A stretch of DNA of 64,000 nt from Neoechinorhynchus agilis (taxonomy: Eukaryota; Animalia; Acanthocephala), in the NCBI GenBank assembly GCA_051530055.1, contig CM121342.1:3285489-3349488 (forward strand), written 5' to 3'. The number at the start of each line of letters is the position of its first letter. Position 1 is the first letter of the stretch. This document shows positions 3,120-59,127 of the stretch, piece after piece. A program made the position numbers and the translations under genes. The notes under the pieces are model-generated. The model saw only the letters and a program-made list of their open reading frames with translations, made no database searches and had not been told where the DNA came from.

Positions 3120-3192
3120 TCCCGAGAACCGGATTTGAACCAGCGGCCTAAGCATCTACAGTCCTCCGCTCTACCAACTGAGCTATCTCGGG
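3120..3192 (-). tRNA. trnY: tRNA-Tyr(GTA), intronless; G-G mismatch in anticodon stem
   Basis: Cloverleaf CCCGAGA/TCTCGGG-A73, D arm GCTC-AGTTGGTA-GAGC, anticodon loop CT-GTA-GA, T loop TTCAAAT. The anticodon 3' strand is TGCTT instead of TCCTT. Confidence 0.9.
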
Positions 3193-6330: not shown

Positions 6331-6691
6331 GAGTTTGCGATGGAAACTCTTGACTCAACCTTAATGAAGTTAATCTATGAATGCACGATTTATTTTAACG
6401 ATTTTTACATTTTACTCACTTTTTTTTAGCAAAGATTCATAGAGCCTTGTATTCGACGGAAAAATTAAGCATAATTTTAGTTTTTAAGCTCTGTTGGATT
6501 CGCCGCAACTTTCAAGGTAAGGTGTTTATTGACGAGATCATAGATAGCGAAGAGCGCAAGAAGTTTTTCTCCGTGAGTTAAGGTAAGGCTCACTTTTCAA
6601 AGAACATCAAAAGAGCATCGATTTTCGCTAACGAACTCTCACTGCGAAAAACAGCTTTCTAACTTTCACTTCTATCTCGAAACAATTTACA

Positions 6692-6773
6692 GTAAGTTGC
6701 GGCCTCGGGCCAAAGCCCAATGACGAGTACAGTGTCCGCTCGGACGCTTCAGAGGGCACCGAAAAAATAAAAG
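6692..6773 (+). ncRNA. Candidate kink-turn structured RNA, family X copy 1
   Basis: GTAAGT, hairpin GGC-ctcgg-GCC, then GCCC-AAT-GA-cgag...GTGTCC-gctc-GGACGC...ttca-GA-GGGC (6715-6757). Confidence 0.45.
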
Positions 6774-7034
6774 AAAATTTTTTGTATCCATCGATGAAGA
6801 TCTTTGTGTCTCAATTCCACAATTCGGGATGAAAATGGACATTGAAGATGTCAATGTGACCGCGAAGCATCGACATCCTGAAGGAAATGAATTAATATTT
6901 CGAAAAACCAATTCTTGCATTCATGCAAAAGGTTTTATTGCTTTAACTTTTCGCCGGAACGATTACATTAACGTTTCATTTGACTTTGTTTCTTCAACAA
7001 ATTCCAAAGGTCTTTACAATTTAGTGCATGATCC

Positions 7035-9700: not shown

Positions 9701-10413
9701 ATATCGTCTATATATCAACGATTATTGAATATCATGAAAAGAAAACGATAATCGCTTATTTAAAGCGTAAACTTTTCTCGGCATAGAATTTGTGGACTAT
9801 TAAGCGAAAACAGAAGCAAATTTCTAGGTCGCAGATGAAATCTCGAACACAAAAACGAGATTATCGCCCCTCCCTCGCCTATGGATGCTTTCGAAGTGAC
9901 GTAATTGTTTGCGTTGCGTATTCCACGATTGCGGACTAATGTTTTACGCAAAAAACTGATCTCAGAGAAACGCTGAATTCGTCCTTTCGACCACTACAAA
10001 AAAAGACCGAAGCGGAGATGTGAAAGTTTTTAAAAACTTTTTGTTCGCCTAAATTCTTTAGTCGTATCCATCGGTTATATTATCAATCTTTCTCTCAGTC
10101 GATAGAGGCAATGTTCACCTCCGATTATCTCAATTCCGTCGGTCGTTTTTGAGGTTTTTTATACTTGAATTGATAAAATCATCGATTGAATCTGTCGGAA
10201 TATTCGACTCTGACGATCACGGTTTCAGGACCGACCGAAATTGATAACAAATTCTTTTCCTTATTTAAAAATTAACTGATTGCACATCAACGGTTTATTT
10301 TTAAGGCAAATCTTTTTAAAATGAACGTGAACGCTTTTCAGAAAATTATCATTGAATGCAATTCGACGGATATTGAACAATCTTCACCCGCACTAAAACC
10401 CCTCCATGATTAT

Positions 10414-10492
10414 CTTTCATTTTTTATGTGCCCTCTGAGATGCAATCGCACCATTGCTCATCATTGGGCTTTGACTTTTCGCCAATACTCAT
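10414..10492 (-). ncRNA. Candidate kink-turn structured RNA, family Y variant (Z)
   Basis: Minus strand GCCC-A-ATGATGA-gcaat-GGTGC-gatt-GCATC-t-CAGA-GGGC (core 10430-10469). Perfect C-box; the donor is mutated to ATGAGT. Confidence 0.45.
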
Positions 10493-13450: not shown

Positions 13451-14414
13451 GTCTAATTAAAAGGATAACACAAATACCGTCGTTTTCAATGATCTAATTA
13501 AAGGAGCAAAGAATGCGTAAAAAAACCCGATTATATCTCAACTTTCGTGTTGTGTCAACGCTCGATTTATAGAAAATTTCAAAATGTTTCATAAACTACT
13601 AAGCAAATAAAAAATGTTTATCTTCTTGTTTAGGTCGCTTTCCACATCCGAGAGGAGGAAACCAAAACTTTCGATGGAAACAATACAGATTATTCCCTAA
13701 AGTTGAGGATACCTCCTGACAATGAGGTTGCCGAATTCCTTAATTGACTGAAGAAGTCAAGTGTGATTGGACGAAATATTTCAATTAAAGCGATTCTTTG
13801 ATATATAATTTTCCCCGCCGCCACATAAAATCGACGGTTTGAATTAGAGTCATTTTATCAATTCAATCAGTAAATTGCGGTTCTTAACCATAAGGAAATT
13901 TTTCTAAAGGGGAAACCTCGCCTCTTTAATCATCTAAAAAGATGTTTTGTCTAAAAGGCTCGAGTTAACAGGTTCGCAACTTCCAACAAAGTTCGGGGAC
14001 CGTGTGCCCGCTTGCAATGTATCGTGTGTTCTATTGTTTTTTAGTTTTACACCCAAATTCGCCCTATTGCCTTCCATTGTATTAGCCGCAGAGATGTGTG
14101 TAAGGTCTCAAGGACAAGACGCCTTTCAAGATTTGGCTCCTTTGATGTTTTACGCTGAAATTTGCTTTATTGCCTTACCAATACAAGAGATAAAGCTGTG
14201 AGGCTTTCTCGTGAAATATTTCAATTGAAAAAAAAGGTTTTATTCGGTCGATTACGAACGCCATAACTTTAAAACTTTCTTGCCTTATTCTCTTCAGACA
14301 AAAATATCCGTTACGTATTTACCCAGGAAGTTTCGTTTTCGGATAAAAGAAAAAGGCCAACATACGAGTATTTTTTTCATCCACACGATCCAACGTCGTA
14401 AACACTTGCAAACA

Positions 14415-14494
14415 GTGAGTATTGGCGAAAAGCCAAAGCCCAGTGATGACCGAAGGTGCGATTGCATCTCAGAGGGCACATAAAAAAATGAAAG
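14415..14494 (+). ncRNA. Candidate kink-turn structured RNA, family Y copy 1
   Basis: GTGAGT, GGC-gaaaa-GCC, GCCC-A-GTGATGA-ccgaa-GGTGC-gatt-GCATC-t-CAGA-GGGC (14438-14477). Confidence 0.45.
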
Positions 14495-14824
14495 ATAATC
14501 AACGGAGGGGTTTTAGCGCAGGTGAAGATTGTTCAATTTTCTGAAAAGCGTTCACGTTCATTTTAAAAAGATTTGCCTTAAAAATAAACCGTTGATGTGC
14601 AATCAGTTAATTTTTAAATAAGGAAAAGAATTTGTTATCAATCTCGGTCGTTCCTGAAACCGAGATCGTCAGAGTCGAATATTCCGACGGATTCAATCGA
14701 TGATTTTATCAATTCAAGTATAAAAAACCTCAAAAGCGACCGACGGAATTGAGATAATCGGAGGTGAACATTGTCTCTATCGACTGAGAGAAAGATTAAT
14801 AATCTAACCGATGAATACGACTTG

Positions 14825-20442: not shown

Positions 20443-23400
20443 CTATTCGTAATCGTACACAAAAGATGGACCCTCTCGGATATTTTCATTTAAAACGTAT
20501 GTACTGTCCTCGGTCTCGTGAGGGACATCCATTTCATTGATCGATGTTACATGTTTAAATAGTTCACTAAGTTCGTATTCTTTTGTAAGATCCGAATCCT
20601 TTTCATCTTTTAATATCTCCTTACAAATGTGTGAGCAATAATTGAGGCAATTCGTTAATGCATAGACCGTAGGATCATTCAAATTTATATCATTAATGTT
20701 TACTTTGCACTGAATTTTGCATTGTCGGTCACAGAATCGGTTAATCAGCTTCAAATGCAATCGCGTTTGGCCAGCACTATCTCTTTTCGAAAGCTTCAAA
20801 ATCGATTGGATTTTAGTGGTAATCAGGTCGCTCATTCTTGGTACACTGTTAAAATTTACTGATTCGGAATTCGCGTTTGGCATTTCAGATGTATTACTCA
20901 CCGTCGGTTTCGCATCCTTCGATTTAGCAACGACCTTATCGCTGGGCAGCAAGCTGAGATCTTTTTCAAATATATTCACGTTTTGATCATCGGATAATTC
21001 ATTGACGTCAGAATGAACTTCCTCAGATTCCAGGCTTTCTTTGAACTTGTGAACAATAGATTCATCCTTAACCGTCTTTGTAGAATTTGCTTCAGCTTGA
21101 TTTAATTTACTACCGATTTGCTCATTAAAATCAAATTTTTCAGATCGGTCACTTAATTTTTCGTCCAATGAATTTTTGAGTTCATTTGTGCTTTTTTGAT
21201 TTGTTACTTTATCTGAAAAAAATGATCCGATTAATTTCTTTTTCGTCCTGGTCCAACTTTGAATTTCTTTTTCGTCCTGGTCCAACTTTTTGAGGAAGAT
21301 GCTGTTTTTTCTACTTTAATTATCATTTGCTCCCCTTCTCCATTTATTGACGTCTGAATTTCAGGAAATGGCAATTCGTTCATTATCGAAGTTTCAGATT
21401 CGATCTTTGATGTGGCACTGTCCGGCGATTCTGTCCTTAGTTCAGATTCTACATCTCCGGCTCTGTCGTATATCGCATCGATATTGTTGGAGATTTCAGT
21501 ATCTTCACTATTCCCTGGTACAGTCAAATTCTGTTCATATTTTTTTGCTTCTTCAATTGTAATAATTTCCGTTCTCAACCGTTCATCTCGAGCTTTAACC
21601 TGTAGACAAATTTCGTTTGCTACTTCAGGATTAAGATTCTCGTTTAGGTCGAAATGATTTGCTGATGGCAAAGTATAGATTTCGGCCAGCACCCCGAGAA
21701 CGAGGGAACCATCTTTGCTTTCGATTGCACCCGTTTTGCGAGCTTTCAGTTTGAAATCCTTAGAAATGTACGTTTCCTCAGTTTTGAAAGAAGATGATTT
21801 ATCGGCCTTTAAGGTAACTGCTTTGTCATTTATTTGCCGTGTTTCTATTATCAAAGATTGTGTCATTAAACTTTTGCTGTCCATGATGGAGGCAGATCCC
21901 TTCTCAATTTGTAGATTCGATTCGGTCAATATATAGTTTCTGTGCTGTCGTTCGTAACTTCCAAATTGAACGCATTTTATCGAACAAAGTTTGAGGCATC
22001 GCTGTCGGCATTCATTTAAGCGTTCTAAGCCGTTCGATTTCTCAATCATTCGGATTCCCCACATTTTCTTGTAGGTTTTTGGACAAACAAGACGTTTATG
22101 AAAATCTGCGCTAATTAGGTTATATTCACCATTTTCGTTCGTACCTTTCTTTTCTTTGTTATATCCAGGATTTTCGAACCTGTAACTTAGTTCAAACCGA
22201 GTTCGTTGTGGGAGTGACGGGGATGTTCGGGGGCTGTTCGGTTATTGTCATCCTCCGACAGTTTCGCAAAAGGAGACAGCGAGACGCTACAAATACTCCG
22301 GTCGAAGCACCCATGTAGAAGCGGAAGTTTTGAAATTCCATCTCCTCCCATACAAGACAGGACGCCCACTCAAATTTCAGAGTTACAAAAGGCCATCTCA
22401 TCTTTTGCAAATGGTTCGGGTCACGGGTTTGACGGACTAAGGCCTCAGCACCTAAAGGACATGATGTCCTTTTCAACTGGTGAAGCAGCTCTCTCTCTAG
22501 GAAGTGCGCTTTCTCGAATAGTCGACCGCCTGACTGGAGAGGACCTGAGCCCCGTTGCAAGGGACCTATTTTTCGGAGCCTCATTGTGTGCCCTCACAAA
22601 AAAAGAAGGTGGGATCCGTCCCATCGCTGTATCTTCGATGATACGCCGACTCGCAGGAAAAATTCTCTGCAAACGTATTACAGAGAAAACCGGAAAGCAA
22701 CTTCGTCCAGTCCAACTGGGCTGCTGCACATCCTGCGGGGCGGAAGCTATTGTCCACTCGCTCCGAAACTTTGCTACGAGAAGCTCAGAGCCGTGCGTGA
22801 TTCTTAAGTGCGATTTTCGGAACGCCTTTAACTCTCTCAATAGAGAAAGCATGTTCTGCGCAATTAGGGATCACGCACCAGAAGCCTTCCAGTATTTTCT
22901 CAATGCCTACGGGACGGCGACTCCTCTGCTTTTCGAAGACCATCTCATTTGGTTCGAAAGAGGAGTGCAGCAAGGAGATCCCCTCGGTCCAATCGCATTC
23001 TCCCTAACAGTAAATCCAATAGCGCATTCTCTCGATTCCAGCTTCAACGCTTGGTACTTGGGTGACGCTACGCTCGGAGGTGATCCCTCCGTTGTACTGC
23101 GCGATTTGGAGACGCCTATTAGGGAGACCTCGAAGATGGGCATTGAGCTTAATGCTGGAAAATGTGAGCTCCTTGTACTGAATATTGGAGACGCCGCCAA
23201 AGTCAAAGAACTAATGGCTGGGTTCGAGGCCGTAGCTCCAGGCCTGAAACTCGTGACTCGGGAACAACTCAGCCTCCTAGGCAGTTGCGTCTTCGATTCA
23301 AATGTGGAAGATGAGATCGGCCATATCATACCGAAACTTTCGTTGCTGTGCGATAGGGTGTGCGCTCTCTCGGCTCATGAAGCCTTGTTTCTCATAAAGA

Positions 23401-25290
23401 ACGCGCTCTTCATCCTCAAATTATTGTACAAGGTTCGCACAGCAACATTTTTCAAACATAAGGAAGGATTGGTAAGCTCGACCGCAAGGTGAGGGCTGCT
23501 CTCAGATGAGGCGTGGCGACAAGCTTCTTTGCCTGTGTCATCTGGGGGATTGGGAATTCGGGCACTAGTGGACCTTGCTTTGCCGGCCTTTCTTGGATCG
23601 TTTGAGGGGAGCCTACCAGTCTCGAAGAACATTTTGAAGGAAAAGTTCTGTCTTGACCGGGATTTCGTGGTGGCGGTTGAGGAATGGTGCCAGCAGACCG
23701 GCGCTAACCATGTTCCCGTGAATGGCCTCAGACAGTCAATCTGGACGGACCTCTTGCCTGGAGAGCTCACAGCTCTCTACTTTCCGGTTCTCGCGATGGG
23801 GTCGTCCGAGCTAGACTGTTGGCAGTTTCAACACGAGAATCTGGGGCGTGGTTGGAGGCTGGTCCTCTGGCATCAGTGGGAACTCTTCTTACTGACGGCG
23901 AACTTCCCGAACATCCTGGAACCCGCCCACCTCTGTAGACTAGACGGCCGTAGACCCGATGGAATTTCGGTCTTCCCGTGGCGGGATGGCAAATGCCTTC
24001 TTTGGGACGCCACGTGTGTGGATACCCTCGCAGCCAGCAACATCCCCTACTCCCTCGAAATCGCCGGTGGTGCCGCCAGTGCAGCGGAAGGGAGGAAAAT
24101 ACGGAAATATCTTCACTTATCGAGGGCTCACTATTTTGTCCCCTTTGGGGTAGAGACGTATGGAGCGCTCGGCAGCTCGGCACTCTCTCTGCTCCAGGAT
24201 CTCTCGAAGAAATTGAGAGAGGCAACCGAAGACTCAAGAGCAGGCGTATTCCTTCGACAAAATATCTCGCTAGCAGTACAACGGGGCAATGCTGCCAGCG
24301 TGATGGCGACGGTCGAGGAAGGGCAAAAGCCGGAATTCGGCGGGAGGTGGTGAGTGTGTTAATTGTCGAGAGATGAAGATTGATTGAAATAAAATATTTT
24401 CGACTTTCCTCTGCTAAAAGCAACCTTTCCGTGTTTCGATAGCCGAGAATAGTCGCCAAGGCACGTTTGCCGGCATTTATCAGTGCAAAGCTCAGTTCTC
24501 AAAGTCCTTGACTTTTCGATCGAATTTATCTTATTACCACTGGTTCGCTTGCAGTTTACGTTTCGCGAATATAATCGATTTGAAGCTGTATTTTCTCTTG
24601 TAAGGACGTTGACGTGCTTCTCATTCAGTGGTATTTGAAGCGTCGGTAGCTTTCTTGCATTGCAGATAAAATTCAACTCTCTGAGCTTCGTCCATTTACT
24701 TTGTAACTCTTCGACTTCGTTGATTTGAACACGGCACATTCCGTAACATTTGTCATCGAATGAATAACTCAACTCGTTATTAATATAGAAATTATAGCCT
24801 TTTGAAACCTCCGTAAATCCCTTGGTCATGGCCGTGTTATTCTGTGAAGTGTCTACTGCTACATTTTCGCTAATAATGCTGCTTTCTATAAATACATTTT
24901 GGCAAGGGCGAGTTTCATTTCCCAGTTTCCGTATAATATCCAGAAAATCTTCGATATCAACTTTTCCACCATTTTGTTGTTCATTCATTAATCGAATATC
25001 AGCGGTAATTGTTTTCGGCCTTAGCAAGAACGAAATGTGGAACTCCTGAAAGTTGACTTGGAAATAGATCGCTACTTCTGTATTCAATCTACTTAAACTT
25101 CTATTCTTAGTCGTTTTCGTTACATAGTAAAAAATTAGCTTCGGTCTCCGAAAAACTGCAAGCGCATTTTGATTTGATCGTGGAGATACCCCTTCAAATT
25201 TGATTTCGTTAGCGAAATTTAATAACTAAAATACAAGACATCGCCTTTCGATACTCGTCCAAGACATGCGAGAATATAAGATTTATCTTT
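20443..25290 (-). pseudogene. Disrupted copy of G3 (966-aa gene at 41994-44894)
   Basis: ORFs 24359-25087, 21231-22064 and 20443-21285 are colinear pieces of G3. It is broken by a CRE-B insertion (22216-24402) and a 29-bp tandem duplication (21233-21289), and 5'-truncated near 25290. Confidence 0.9.
22216..24402 (+). mobile_element. CRE-like non-LTR retrotransposon family B, 5'-truncated, RT + RLE, few lesions
   Basis: 415-aa ORF with LRPQHLKDM, GGIRPIAV, DFRNAFNS, GVQQGDPLGP, WYLGD (RT); downstream ORF with RRPDG, WDATCVDT, QNISLAVQRGNA; 3' AATAAAA. The zinc-knuckle region is deleted. Confidence 0.92.
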
Positions 25291-25304
25291 AGCTAAAACA
25301 TTTT

Positions 25305-25386
25305 CTTTTATTTTTTCGGTGCCCTCTGAAGCGTCCGCTCGGACACTGTACTCGTCATTGGGCTTTGGCCTGAGGCCGCAACTTAC
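25305..25386 (-). ncRNA. Candidate kink-turn structured RNA, family X copy 2
   Basis: Reverse complement of the 6692-6773 motif (core 25321-25363); loop reads GAGC. Confidence 0.45.
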
Positions 25387-25719
25387 TGTAAATTGTTTCG
25401 AGATAGAAGTGAAAGTTAGAAAGCTGTTTTTCGCAGTGAGAGTTCGTTAGCGAAAATCGATGCTCTTTTGATGTTCTTTGAAAAGTGAGCTTTACCTTAA
25501 CTCACGGAGAAAAACTTCTTGCGCTCTTCGCTATCTATGATCTCGTCAATAAACACCTTACCTTGAAAGTTGCGGCGAATCCAACAGAGCTTAAAAACTA
25601 AAATTATGCTTAATTTTTTCCGTCGAATACAAGGCTCTATGAATTTTTGCTAAAAACCAAAGTGAGTGAAATGTAAAAATCGTTAAAATCAATCGTGCAT
25701 TCATAGATAGTTAAGTCAA

Positions 25720-27984: not shown

Positions 27985-28057
27985 CCCGAGATAGCTCAGT
28001 TGGTAGAGCGGAGGACTGTAGATCCTTAGGCCGCTGGTTCAAATCCGGCTCTCGGGA
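27985..28057 (+). tRNA. trnY: tRNA-Tyr(GTA), intronless, fully paired cloverleaf
   Basis: CCCGAGA TA GCTC AGTTGGTA GAGC G GAGGA CTGTAGA TCCTT AGGCC GCTGG TTCAAAT CCGGC TCTCGGG A; C1:G72 and A73 are Tyr identity elements. Confidence 0.95.
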
Positions 28058-33825: not shown

Positions 33826-34421
33826 AGATAGCAGATAATTAATTACACCAAAGTAAAACATCTTAGTTGGCAAATCGAGTGGTCTGCAAATTATGGAATC
33901 AAGCGGCGTGTTGATTTTATAAGCGTGATTTACCAAGTTCATAATTTGAGTATTGAGAAGAAATAACTAAAGGAACTCAATGAATCCGCCCACTTTAACA
34001 TCCTTGGAAAACCGAATTGGAAAAATACACAAAAAAAGAGTTAATTCGCTTAAATCTGTAAACTGAATCTCCTATAAATATGCCATTTTAAAGTCTTTTG
34101 CAAAGAGAGCTCTTCAACAAAGGTAATATCCTTTTTTGAAGTTATTCGGCAAACCTTGATAATGTCGGAATTATCGGACGAAATATCAGCAATAAATCAG
34201 TCAATTTAAATCCGGGCGCTAAATTTTTCAATTGAAAAAAAGGTTTTATTCGGTCGATTACGATTGCCATAACTTTAAAACTTTCTTGTCTTATTCTCTT
34301 AAGACAAAAATATCCGTTACGTATTTACCTAGGAAGTTTCGTTTTCGGGTAAAAGAAAAAGGCCAACATACGAGTATTTTTTTTCATCCACACGATCCAA
34401 CGTCGTAAACGCTTACAAACA

Positions 34422-34500
34422 GTGAGTATTGGCGAAAAGCCAAAGCCCAGTGATGACCGAAGGTGCGATTGCATCTCAGAGGGCACATAAAAAATGAAAG
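34422..34500 (+). ncRNA. Candidate kink-turn structured RNA, family Y copy 2
   Basis: Same motif as 14415-14494 (core 34445-34484). Confidence 0.45.
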
Positions 34501-35404
34501 ATAATCAACGGAGGGGTTTTAGCGAGGGTGAAGATTGTTCAATATCCGTCGAATTGCATTCAATGATAATTTTCTGAAAAGCGTTCACGTTCATTTTAAA
34601 AAGATTTGCCTTAAAAATAAACCGTTGATGTGCAATCAGTTAATTTTTAAATAAGGAAAAGAATTTGTTATCAATCTCGGTCGGTCCTGAAACCGAGATG
34701 GTCAGAGTCGAATATTCCGACAGATTCAATCGATGATTTTATCAATTCAAGTATAAAAAACCTCAAAAGCGACCGACGGAATTGAGATAATCGGAGGTGA
34801 ACATTGTCTCTTTCGACTGAGAAAAAGATTAATAATCTAACCGATGGATACGACTAAAGAATTTAGATGAAAAAGTTTTTAAAAACTTTCACATCTCCGC
34901 TTCGGTATTTTTTTGTAGTGGTCGAAAGGACGAATTCAGCGTTTCTCTGAGATCAGTTTTTTGCGTATAACATTAATCCGCAATCGTGGAATACGCAACG
35001 CAAACAATTACGTCACTTCGAAAGCATCCATAGGCGAGGGAGGGGCGATAATCTCGTTTTTGTGTTCGAGATTTCATCTGTGACATAGAAATTTGCTTGT
35101 TTTCGCTTAATAGTCCACAAGTTCGATGCCAAGAAAAGTTTACGCTTTAAATCAGCGTTTTTCGTTTTCTTTTCATGATATTAAATTATCGTTGATATAG
35201 AAGACGATGCTCAATTGATTCATTTAGTCAAAGATGAGCTTATTAATGGATTTACGGGAAAAACGATATTTACAAACTTTCATCGAAAGATAGGCGATCG
35301 TTTTAAAGAAACGTCTTAAATTTTCGGCTGAATCAACGAGATGCAGATTTCTCAAGATAATTCTCCATCGCCTTCACAGATACCAAATATTCGTCAAAGG
35401 TTTT

Positions 35405-37850: not shown

Positions 37851-38094
37851 TAAATACCTTCAGAATTTGTTGAAGAAACAAAGTCAAATGAAACGTTAAT
37901 GTAATCATTCCGGCGAAAAGCTAAAGCTACAAAACCTTTTGCATGAATGCAAGAATTGGTTTTTCGAAATATTAATTTATTTCCTTCAAGATGTCGATGC
38001 TTCGCGGTCAATTGACATCTTTAATGTCCATTTTCATCCCGAATTGTTGAATTGAGACAAACAAAGACCTTCATCGATGGATACAAAAAAATTT

Positions 38095-38176
38095 CTTTTA
38101 TTTTTTCGGTGCCCTCTGAAGCGTCCGCGCGGACACTGTACTCGTCATTGGGCTTTGGCCTGAGGCCGCAACTTAC
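38095..38176 (-). ncRNA. Candidate kink-turn structured RNA, family X copy 3
   Basis: Core 38111-38153; loop GCGC. Confidence 0.45.
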
Positions 38177-38371
38177 TGTAAATTGTTTCGAGATAGAAGT
38201 GAAAGTTAGAAAGCTGTTTTTCGCAGTGAGAGTTCGTTAGCGAAAATCGATGCTCTTTTGATGTTCTTTGAAAAGTGAGCCTTACCTTAACTCACGGAGA
38301 AAAACTTCTTGCGCTCTTCGCTATCAATGATTTCGTCAATAAACACCTTACCTTGAAAGTTGCGGCGAATC

Positions 38372-46172: not shown

Positions 46173-46781
46173 AGATAGCAGATAATTAATTACACCAAAG
46201 TAAAACATCTTAGTTGGCAAATCGAGTGGTCTGCAAATTATGGAATCAAGCGGCGTGTTGACTTCTCCTTTTTTATAAGCGTGATTTACCAAGTTAATAA
46301 TTTGAGTATTGAGAAGCCATAACTAAAGGAACTCAATGAATCCGCCCACTTTAACATCTTTGGAAAAACGAATTGGAAAAAATACACAAAAAAAGAGTTA
46401 ATTCGCTTGAATCTGTAAACTGAATCTTCTATAAATATGCCATTTTTAAAGTCTCCTACAAAGAGAGCTCTTCAACAAAGGTAATATCCTTTTTTTGTAG
46501 TTATTCGGCAAACCTTGATAATGTCGGAATTATCGGACGAAATATCAGCAATAAATCAGTCAATTTAAATTCGGGCGTGAAATTTTTCAATTGAAAAAAA
46601 GGTTTTATTCGGTCGATTACGATTGCCATAACTTTAAAACTTTCTTATCTTATTCTCTTAAGACAAAAATATCCGTTATGTATTTACCTAGGAAGTTTCG
46701 TTTTCGGATAAAAGAAAAGGCCAACATACGAGTATTTTCATTTTTATCCACACGATCCAACGTCGTAAACACTTGCAAACA

Positions 46782-46859
46782 GTGAGTATTGGCGAAAAGC
46801 GAAAGCCCAGTGATGACCGAAGGTGCGATTGCATCTCAGAGGGCACAAAAAAATGAAAG
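46782..46859 (+). ncRNA. Candidate kink-turn structured RNA, family Y copy 3
   Basis: Core 46805-46844 identical to the other Y copies. Confidence 0.45.
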
Positions 46860-48114
46860 ATAATCAACGGAGGGGTTTTAGCGCAGGTGAAGATTTTTCA
46901 ATTTTCTGAAAAGCGTTCACGTTCATTTTAAAAAGGGGAAAAAATTTTGTTATCAATCTCGGTCGGTCCTGAAACCGAGATCGTCAGAGTCGAATATTCC
47001 GACGGATTCAATCGATGATTTTATCAATTCAAGTATAAAAACCTCAAAAACGACCGATGGAATTGAGATAATCGAAGGTGAACATTGTCTCTATCGACTG
47101 AGAAAAAGATTAATAATCTAACCGATGGATACGACTAAAGAATTTAGGCGAACAAAAAGTTTTTAAAAACTTTCACATCTCCGCTTCGGTCTTTTTTTGT
47201 AGTGGTCGAAAGGACGAATTCAGCGTTTCTCTGAGATCAGTTTTTTGCGTATAACATTAATCCGCAATCGTGGAATACGCAACGCAAACAATTACGTCAC
47301 TTCGAAAGCATCCATAGGCGAGGGAGGGGCGATAATCTCGTTTTTGTGTTCGAGATTTCATCTGCGACCTAGAAATTTGCTTTTGTTTTTGCTTAATAGT
47401 CCACAAATTCGATGCCAAGAAAAGTTTACGCTTTATCGTTTTCTTTTGATGATAGTCAAAGATGAGCTTATTAATGGATTTACGGGAAAAACGATATTTA
47501 CAAACTTTCATCGAAAGATAGGCGATCGTTTTAAAGAAACGTCTTAAATTTTCGGCTGAATCAACGAGATGCAGATTTCTCAAGATAATTCTCCATCGCC
47601 TTCACAGATACCAAATATTCGTCAAAGGTTTTCTCTTTCTCTTGAAAAAAAACCCTAGACTAACAAATCAATCGATATTGTCAGTTATTGTAAATCACGC
47701 AGCTTTCAAAAGGTCAATTCTGAAAATATTTCATGTTTGCGAATCCGATGAAAAAGACGAAGTGAAAATCGAAGAGTTTATGGATTTTCCTGGTAAGGAG
47801 AATCGGGGCGATTCAATTTCTGAGGTCCTCAAAACCAATAAAAATGACGCAGCGACTCAGACGTTGGGACAACGACCATTTAGATTTAAATCTCCTTTGG
47901 AGTTAATCAAAAACATTGATGTGAATTATTGAAATTTGAGAAAGTTGGATGAGAATGTTTTAGATGCAGCGGACAGGCGACTGTACGCCATGGTAATGGC
48001 GCAGCAGACAAACCAACATGGAATCGATTTTTCTCAAGAATAAATTATGTAAATGCTTTTTTGGCTTAAGATAGCCGTTAAATTTTATCCAAGGTTGCTT
48101 TCGAGTGGTTTTCA

Positions 48115-51430: not shown

Positions 51431-51680
51431 AATTGTAAAGACCTTTGGAATTTGTTGAAGAAACAAAGTCAAATGAAACGTTAATGTAATCGTTCCGGCG
51501 AAATGCTAAAGCTATAAAACCTTTTGCATAAATGCAAAAATTGGTTTTTGGAAATATGAATTCATTTCCTTCAAGATGTCGATGCTTCGCGGTCACATTG
51601 ACATCTTCAATGTTCATTTTCATCCCGAATTGTGGAATTGAGACAAACAAAGATCTTCATCGATGGATACAAAAAATTTT

Positions 51681-51762
51681 CTTTTATTTTTTCGGTGCCC
51701 TCTGAAGCGTCCGCTCGGACACTGTACTCGTCATTGGGCTTTGGCCTGAGGCCGCAACTTAC
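51681..51762 (-). ncRNA. Candidate kink-turn structured RNA, family X copy 4
   Basis: Core 51697-51739. Confidence 0.45.
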
Positions 51763-52124
51763 TGTAAATTGTTTCGAGATAGAAGTGAAAGTTAGAAAGC
51801 TGTTTTTCGCAGTGAGAGTTCGTTAGCGAAAATCGATGCTCTTTTGATGTTCTTTGAAAAGTGAGCCTTACCTTAACTCACGGAGAAAAACTTCTTGCGC
51901 TCTTCGCTATCTATTATCTCGTCAATAAACACCTTACCTTGAAAGTTGCGGCGAATTCAACAGAGCTTAAAAACTAAAATTATGCTTAATTTTTCCGTCG
52001 AATACAAGGCTCTATGAATCTTTGCTAAAAAAAAGTGAGTAAAATGTAAAAATCGTTAAAATAAATCGTGCATTCATAGATTAACTTCATTAAGGTTGAG
52101 TCAAGAGTTTCCATCGCAAACTCT

Positions 52125-59054: not shown

Positions 59055-59127
59055 CCCGAGATAGCTCAGTTGGTAGAGCGGAGGACTGTAGATGCTTAGG
59101 CCGCTGGTTCAAATCCGGCTCTCGGGA
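59055..59127 (+). tRNA. trnY: tRNA-Tyr(GTA), intronless; G-G mismatch in anticodon stem
   Basis: Same cloverleaf; anticodon 3' strand TGCTT. Confidence 0.9.

Follow-up and report, generated by a model that had tools for sequence, protein, structure and literature searches.

What is the element that recurs directly after a 5' splice-site sequence at positions 6692-6773 of the Neoechinorhynchus agilis stretch analysed here (64,000 nucleotides, hereafter "the window")? An earlier note, made from sequence alone, described an eight-copy, two-family RNA motif with kink-turn geometry, and inferred an undescribed intronic splicing-regulatory element or a miniature C/D-like RNA of about 45 nt. To verify the motif, we first searched the window with a degenerate pattern for the hairpin plus the 5' half of the motif, which revealed exactly eight sites (6701+, 10483-, 14424+, 25377-, 34431+, 38167-, 46791+ and 51753-), whereas none of 100 shuffles gave a match. 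A covariance model of the predicted kink-turn domain, run with filters off, found exactly these eight sites and nothing else at E<=1. The sequence at 6692-6773 reads ACA/GTAAGTTGC-GGCCTCGGGCC-AAA-GCCC-AAT-GA-CGAG...CAGA-GGGC-ACCG, followed by an A-rich stretch. Alignment of the eight copies showed four copies of family X, three of family Y and one further copy, Z, with about 85 nt shared by all. It confirmed the shared ACA-GT(A/G)AGT (AT instead of GT in copy Z), the GGC-N5-GCC hairpin, AAA, GCCC-(AAT/AGT)-GA...CAGA-GGGC and the A-rich tail, as well as an inner hairpin that differs between the families but stays paired (GUGUCC/GGACGC in X, AGGUGC/GCAUCU in Y). G-U pairs, the donor and the promoter described below all point to the strand that had been chosen in the note. 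The motif as observed in the earlier note is therefore real, with one correction: the flanks are not otherwise dissimilar, since more than 130 nt upstream is conserved within each family, covering the promoter and the exon, and both families share a promoter element and a 3' box.

Together with the gene signals described below, the eight copies were resolved into the following parts, in which start sites and exon boundaries are predicted and "kink-turn domain" denotes a domain recognized from sequence.

6560..6778 (+), spliced-leader (SL) RNA gene X1: PSE-like GAAGTTTTTC 6560-6568; predicted start near 6620; leader exon about 6620-6691; donor GTAAGT 6692-6697; hairpin II 6701-6711; kink-turn domain 6715-6757; 3' box 6766-6778.
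6715..6757 (+), kink-turn domain of X1: C-stem GCCC/GGGC, bulge AAU, G-A and A-G, 3b-3n C-A, 4b-4n G-C, distal hairpin GUGUCC-GCUC-GGACGC.
14311..14499 (+), SL RNA gene Y1: TTACGT at 14311 and PSE GAAGTTTCG 14327-14335; leader exon about 14383-14414 (ACACGATCC...CAAACA); donor GTGAGT 14415-14420; hairpin II 14424-14434; kink-turn domain 14438-14477; 3' box AATGAAAGATAAT 14487-14499.
34317..34505 (+), SL RNA gene Y2, whose exon differs from Y1 at two positions (...AAACGCTTACAAACA): donor 34422-34427; kink-turn domain 34445-34484; 3' box 34493-34505.
46692..46864 (+), SL RNA gene Y3: donor 46782-46787; hairpin II with one mismatch (GCG for GCC) 46791-46801; kink-turn domain 46805-46844; 3' box 46852-46864; the upstream TTACGT reads TTATGT.
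25300..25518 (-), SL RNA gene X2: PSE 25510-25518; exon about 25387-25458; donor 25381-25386; hairpin II 25367-25377; kink-turn domain 25321-25363; 3' box 25300-12.
38090..38308 (-), SL RNA gene X3: PSE 38300-38308; exon about 38177-38248; donor 38171-38176; hairpin II 38157-38167; kink-turn domain 38111-38153.
51676..51894 (-), SL RNA gene X4: PSE 51886-51894; exon about 51763-51834; donor 51757-51762; hairpin II 51743-51753; kink-turn domain 51697-51739; 3' box 51676-51688.
10409..10492 (-), copy Z, a probable pseudogene: the intron part is intact (hairpin II 10473-10483, kink-turn domain 10430-10469, 3' box 10409-10421), but GT is replaced by AT (10487-10492) and there is no leader exon and no PSE upstream.

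Thus, seven copies look intact, and Z is probably a pseudogene even though its domain scores highest with the covariance model. The window is part of a cluster of alternating Y(+) and X(-) genes on contig 2, from 3.29 to 3.41 Mb.

To find out how widespread the element is, we searched the 46.2-Mb genome, in which three contigs hold 94% of the sequence (PMC12690905), with a pattern for the core, which gave 40 copies. Six more with small differences turned up while leaders were sampled, and one divergent class came from a genome-wide covariance-model search, which scored only 150 of 15,595 candidates and hence gives no copy count; in total, the genome contains about 47 or more copies. These fall into at least six classes, which differ completely in the sequence 5' of the GT but share its last bases, ...CTTACAARCA or ...AATTTACA. 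All 30 cores examined have a donor-like hexamer at the expected place, and each except pseudogene Z has a recognisable leader directly upstream. No coding exon or ORF precedes the donor. In favor of a cis-acting element regulating the splicing of a protein-coding host gene, as in RPL30 autoregulation, the kink-turn-like motif lies 23 nt downstream of a consensus donor. This reading is contradicted by the absence of a coding exon, by the at least six unrelated exons, by the position of the RPL30-like gene elsewhere (contig 2, 14.45 Mb), and by the gene signals and homology presented below; we consider it very unlikely.

To identify signals of gene expression, we located the U1, U2, U4 and U5 genes of the same genome. 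All carry RAAGTTT(T)C/T at -58 to -62, mostly preceded by TTACGT about 11 nt upstream (TTACGT in U2 and U4, variants in U1 and U5). A second U4 copy (contig 1, 4763741-4763875, minus strand) has a replaced 5' end (59 bits against 103) but the same 3' box as the main U4 gene, and is probably a variant or a pseudogene. SL genes of class Y and of a further class, W, have GTTACGTATTTACC-N3-RAAGTTTCG starting 88-93 nt before the donor, and X genes have RAAGTTTTTCTC at -132. Adding about 60 nt predicts leaders of about 30-33 nt for Y and W (about 32 nt for Y), beginning CACACGA, and of about 72 nt for X. These predictions agree with the 5' limits of leader copies dispersed in the genome (CACACGATCTAAC... 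for Y, -66 to -70 for X) and with the homology boundary of one copy, L025, at -73. The predicted X leader is longer than the SL exons quoted for other phyla in the papers we read (16-46 nt). Downstream, U4 has ATGAAACAAAAGAAAAA and U5 has AATGAAAGATATAA a few bases after the RNA end, while SL-Y genes have AATGAAAGATAAT and SL-X genes have AATAAAAGAAAAT 8-10 nt after the C-stem; U5 and SL-Y share the string AATGAAAGATA. The A-rich tail is therefore best read as an snRNA 3' box rather than as part of the RNA, and on that reading the RNA ends just after the kink-turn C-stem, giving predicted lengths of about 97 nt for class Y and about 140 nt for class X. Both the promoter and the 3' box are defined by comparison within this one genome.

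We next searched for the leaders outside the genes. The 19-20 nt directly 5' of the donor occurred 84 times (X) and at least 181 times (Y) in the genome, against about 29 and about 5 genes, respectively. Of 40 such places that we retrieved, six were further genes and 34 were leader-only, and in all 34 similarity to the gene stopped exactly at ACA. Most leader-only copies continue into short hammerhead-bearing, Penelope-like retroelement bodies, often with an inverted partial copy upstream; the sampled leader-bearing copies are thus mostly retroelements and not host genes. Two of them, L040 with a Y leader and L058 with an X leader, carry the same body (92% identical over 100 nt) joined at the same base. 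Using this body (which starts ATCGCTGAAGAAGATCCGAGATAGT) as a probe, we found at least 281 copies of the family, many of which form head-to-head inverted pairs 14-60 nt apart with an SL leader in the middle. Among 29 distinct copies, 23 are preceded by a leader ending in ...CA, from at least six leader classes, and five carry instead ...CCCTGTGTTTTAG, a canonical 3' splice acceptor (TTTTAG), at the same point. In several families, the acceptor lies only 2-9 nt before the hammerhead core. A leader thus replaces an upstream segment ending in AG, at a fixed point and with interchangeable leaders, which is what SL trans-splicing followed by reverse transcription leaves in DNA. This record consists of DNA retrocopies only; a search of public assemblies for transcripts with an exact protein of the window found nothing. 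ORFs downstream of three leader-bearing copies gave only neighbouring host domains (LRR, collagen, AMP-binding) and were not informative.

We also considered whether the leader-only copies could be SL genes split by retroelement insertions. This was rejected because of the donor-like hexamers and leaders found at the 30 cores and because the leader-only copies lie on all chromosomes, far from the genes. Likewise, inspection by eye revealed no complementary 3' strand with which the leader could form helix I of the adjacent hammerhead. One locus, L051 (contig 1, 4614188-4614506, minus strand), has an SL-gene-like promoter element (GAAGTTTTTCTC) and a short X-like leader followed by a hammerhead retroelement body instead of the SL intron, and may be a chimera of an SL gene and a retrocopy. 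At four other loci on contig 1 (L037, L039, L041 and L042), two or three tandem partial leader relics (CACACGATCAACGTCGT) precede a full Y leader that abuts the ATG of a 168-codon ORF without a Pfam match. This is reminiscent of the relict leaders of dinoflagellate retrogenes, where leader sequences fixed in genomic DNA at the 5' ends of retro-copied transcripts likewise reveal trans-splicing without RNA data; here, however, the bodies are mainly hammerhead-bearing, Penelope-like short retroelements, often with an inverted partial copy upstream, and carry many leader classes.

The leaders led us to compare the genes with an experimentally established SL RNA, that of bdelloid rotifers (Pouchkina-Stantcheva & Tunnacliffe 2005; leader GGCTTATTACAACTTACCAAGAG, PMC3795323, Table 1), whose leader resembles the W and Y leaders of N. 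agilis in its 3' part (AACTTAC...). Scanning metagenome contigs for the last 17 bases of the bdelloid leader plus GT gave 102 loci, which are assigned to bdelloid-type rotifers only because they contain this leader. Their introns read GTAAAT-GATC-N6-GATC-AAATACAT-GTTGC-RAT-GA-CGA-bulge-11-bp hairpin-CAGA-GCAAC, followed by a T-run, i.e., the same order of parts as in N. agilis: a leader ending in an ACTTAC-like element that pairs with the donor, a short hairpin, and stem-RAUGAYGA-distal hairpin-CAGA-stem at the 3' end. The bdelloid-type genes often occur as divergent pairs whose leaders start about 150-165 bp apart, and as clusters of up to six on one contig. Ending the RNA at the C-stem gives 23 + 82 = 105 nt for these loci, which matches the 105-106 nt reported in 2005 for an RNA that reportedly also contains a putative spliceosome-binding motif; a length of about 100 nt is given elsewhere (PMC1925144). 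The overall size is thus similar (about 97 against about 105 nt). In contrast, only about 7-10 nt of the leaders are alike, the N. agilis exon ends in A and not in the usual G before GT, there are many divergent leader classes (one about 72 nt long) against one 23-nt leader, the C-stem and hairpin sequences differ completely, and no T-run follows the N. agilis domain directly.

Across 46-53 nonredundant sequences from both groups, the only invariant columns were the T of the donor, C-(R)TGA(Y)GA and CAGAG. Covariation in a wider alignment had been set as a test beforehand, and was found: on the domain alignment, 91.5% of cells form pairs, against 28-49% when the partners are slid, and there are 101 double-change cells against 34 in shuffles, with 0 of 500 shuffles reaching the observed value. 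Whole-gene alignment with MAFFT across the two groups mis-registered hairpin II and the N. agilis distal hairpin, so that cross-group pair counts are reliable only for the C-stem and 4b-4n, and the distal-hairpin counts rest mainly on bdelloid rows. The C-stem (GCCC/GGGC against GUUGC/GCAAC) is fully compensated; it is 95.7% paired, with compensatory changes at 3 of its 5 pairs (UA/UA/GC in the bdelloid rows, GC/CG/CG in N. agilis), while the closing C-G and the 4b-4n G-C never vary. The divergent N. agilis class found by the model search (L193) has a third distal hairpin, GGCGAU/AUCGCC, which is still paired. Independent MFE folds of N. agilis classes Y, W1, W3 and X and of a bdelloid RNA gave the same three domains, including ACUUAC/GUAAGU pairing between exon and donor in the four N. 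agilis classes. This conservation between acanthocephalan and bdelloid-type sequences makes the structural reading stronger than could be judged from the window alone. It also argues against a repeat or transposon terminus without an RNA function of its own. That view could draw on the multicopy, clustered arrangement and on the recurrence of the exon part at the heads of hundreds of retroelement copies, but it is at odds with the snRNA promoter and 3' box signals. Moreover, the intron part was never found without a donor-like hexamer, and the leader-only copies end exactly at the donor while leaderless relatives carry an AG acceptor there. We regard it as very unlikely.

Does the 3' domain qualify as a kink-turn? 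Read on the kink-turn scheme, the bulged strand is C-stem, L1-L3 = RRU, G1b, A2b, Y3b, G4b, and the other strand is C4n, A3n, G2n, A1n, C-stem. At the sequence level, C7-G58, U10, G11, A12, G56 and A57 are invariant in 46 sequences from the two groups; every base the motif requires is invariant, and everything else varies. The element equals a C/D pair (RUGAUGA/CUGA) except that 3n is A and not the U of a D box, giving C-A in X, W and the bdelloid rows and U-A in Y. By the published rule, 3b = C allows ion-induced folding, whereas a Watson-Crick 3b-3n needs protein (PMC4382518). The U4 snRNA 5' stem-loop bound by 15.5K/Snu13 likewise has a 3-nt bulge ending in U, tandem G-A/A-G and a C-G closing pair (N. 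agilis U4 reads GCU-GAU-GA-GG...CC-GA-GGC, and the SL reads GCCC-AAU-GA-CG...CA-GA-GGGC). U4 differs, however, by G-C at 3b-3n and a pentaloop, where the SL domain has C-A or U-A followed by a bulge (4-7 nt) and a long distal hairpin, and the SL domain lies at the 3' end of the RNA. The genome encodes a clear Snu13/15.5K orthologue (E=4e-55 to 2ozb/1e7k).

A miniature box C/D guide RNA, the second suggestion of the earlier note, would be consistent with the C-box-like RUGAUGA/AUGACGA and the D-like box closed by a terminal stem. In box C/D RNAs and the U3 B/C or C'/D motifs, such boxes are also brought together by a terminal stem at an RNA end, which is how U3, U8 and snoRNAs are capped by Snu13 and protected at the 3' end. 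However, the D-like box is invariantly CAGA and not CUGA, and the 6-11 nt upstream of it form a hairpin stem with compensatory changes and hence cannot be a conserved guide. There is no C'/D' pair and no rRNA complementarity, and the domain is always fused to an exon, a donor and hairpin II. No Rfam C/D family matched the core at E<=10. More generally, no Rfam family, including SL1, SL2 and U4, matched the RNA: the X gene gave no hits at E<=10, and the Y gene gave only chance hits, all upstream of the RNA. We consider a C/D guide RNA very unlikely.

Nematode SL1/SL2 and the flatworm, Hydra, Ciona and trypanosome SL RNAs are likewise small multicopy snRNA-like genes whose leader exon pairs with its own donor in stem-loop I and is donated to AG acceptors. 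Those RNAs carry an Sm-binding site between stem-loops (PMC7986045; PMC6053224), whereas 52 of 53 predicted RNAs here lack RAU3-6GR and the kink-turn domain takes the 3' end; U1, U4 and U5 of the same genome have AAUUUUUGG, and this canonical Sm site of U4 has no counterpart in the predicted SL RNA. U-runs follow the domain directly in bdelloids (AYUUUUY) and 20-40 nt later in N. agilis (X, AAAAUUUUUUGU; Y, GGGGUUUUAG), and could be Sm-like sites if the RNA is longer than the 3' box suggests. It is therefore possible, although in our view unlikely, that these are SL RNA genes whose conserved asymmetric loop is not a protein-bound kink-turn but a docking or base-pairing site for another RNA (CAGAG resembles the U6 ACAGAGA box), or that the particle is still Sm based through a degenerate downstream U-run. 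Paulinella SL RNA also lacks a typical Sm site, with no replacement known there (PMC6053224). On the other hand, every invariant base is one that the kink-turn consensus requires, and the 3' box shared with U5 places the RNA end before the N. agilis U-runs.

Taken together, we conclude with considerable confidence that each copy is an SL RNA gene, so that the interpretation in the earlier note was only partly supported: the C-stem, 3-nt bulge and tandem G-A/A-G next to a real 5' splice site held, whereas the proposed functions did not. In this view, an snRNA-type promoter (TTACGT-N11-RAAGTTTC) about 60 nt before the start drives a small capped RNA, in which the ACUUAC-like 3' end of the leader exon pairs with the GURAGU donor to form stem-loop I, followed by hairpin II and the 3'-terminal kink-turn domain, and the spliceosome uses the donor to transfer the leader onto AG acceptors of other transcripts. 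The analysis itself establishes the gene anatomy, the homology with bdelloid SL RNA, the structural covariation and a DNA-level record of leader addition at an AG acceptor, while transcription, the RNA ends, leader addition to host mRNAs, the kinked geometry and protein binding are inferred. Specifically, Snu13/15.5K or another L7Ae-family protein would bind the kink-turn, nucleate the SL particle and protect or define its 3' end in place of an Sm ring, perhaps through a U3-like maturation route. Indirect support comes from the position of the domain at the very 3' end and from the use of such a terminal motif by U3, U8 and snoRNAs for 3'-end protection and cap hypermethylation. More tentatively, SL RNAs of rotifers and acanthocephalans (Syndermata) may form a new kind of spliceosomal particle without an Sm ring, in which a box C/D-like kink-turn bound by Snu13 nucleates the particle, defines the 3' end and may recruit cap hypermethylation by the U3/snoRNA route, and which in N. 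agilis has diversified into many leader classes.

SL RNAs as such are known. In the literature searched, we found no paper linking Acanthocephala with spliced leaders or trans-splicing, beyond a passing mention in a Brachionus EST paper that found no leader in that monogonont; the two N. agilis genome papers do not mention trans-splicing, and no relevant paper links spliced leaders with kink-turns, Snu13, 15.5K or L7Ae. The genes thus provide gene-level evidence, and a DNA-level record of use, for SL trans-splicing in Acanthocephala. Homology with the bdelloid SL RNA dates the system to at least their common ancestor and bears on the reported absence of an SL in monogononts (PMC1925144). A conserved kink-turn domain and no canonical Sm site, in a class of RNA expected to be Sm bound, point to a possible alternative route to building a splicing particle. 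Annotation and expression work on this parasite should take leader addition into account, and SL-detection tools that filter on an Sm motif by default would reject these genes (PMC7986045).

Finally, we examined what else the window contains. Of 18 ORFs scanned against Pfam, one (22245-23492, +) has a reverse-transcriptase domain (RVT_1, E=5e-16), so a retrotransposon lies between the SL genes; none of the other 17 (all at least 163 aa) has a match, and no host gene usable as an anchor was found. An Rfam search of the whole window at the gathering threshold returned only three tRNAs, at 3120-3192 (-), 27985-28057 (+) and 59055-59127 (+). These are intron-less tRNA-Tyr(GUA)-like genes, two of which have a mismatch in the anticodon stem, and they may be SINE heads rather than tRNA genes.
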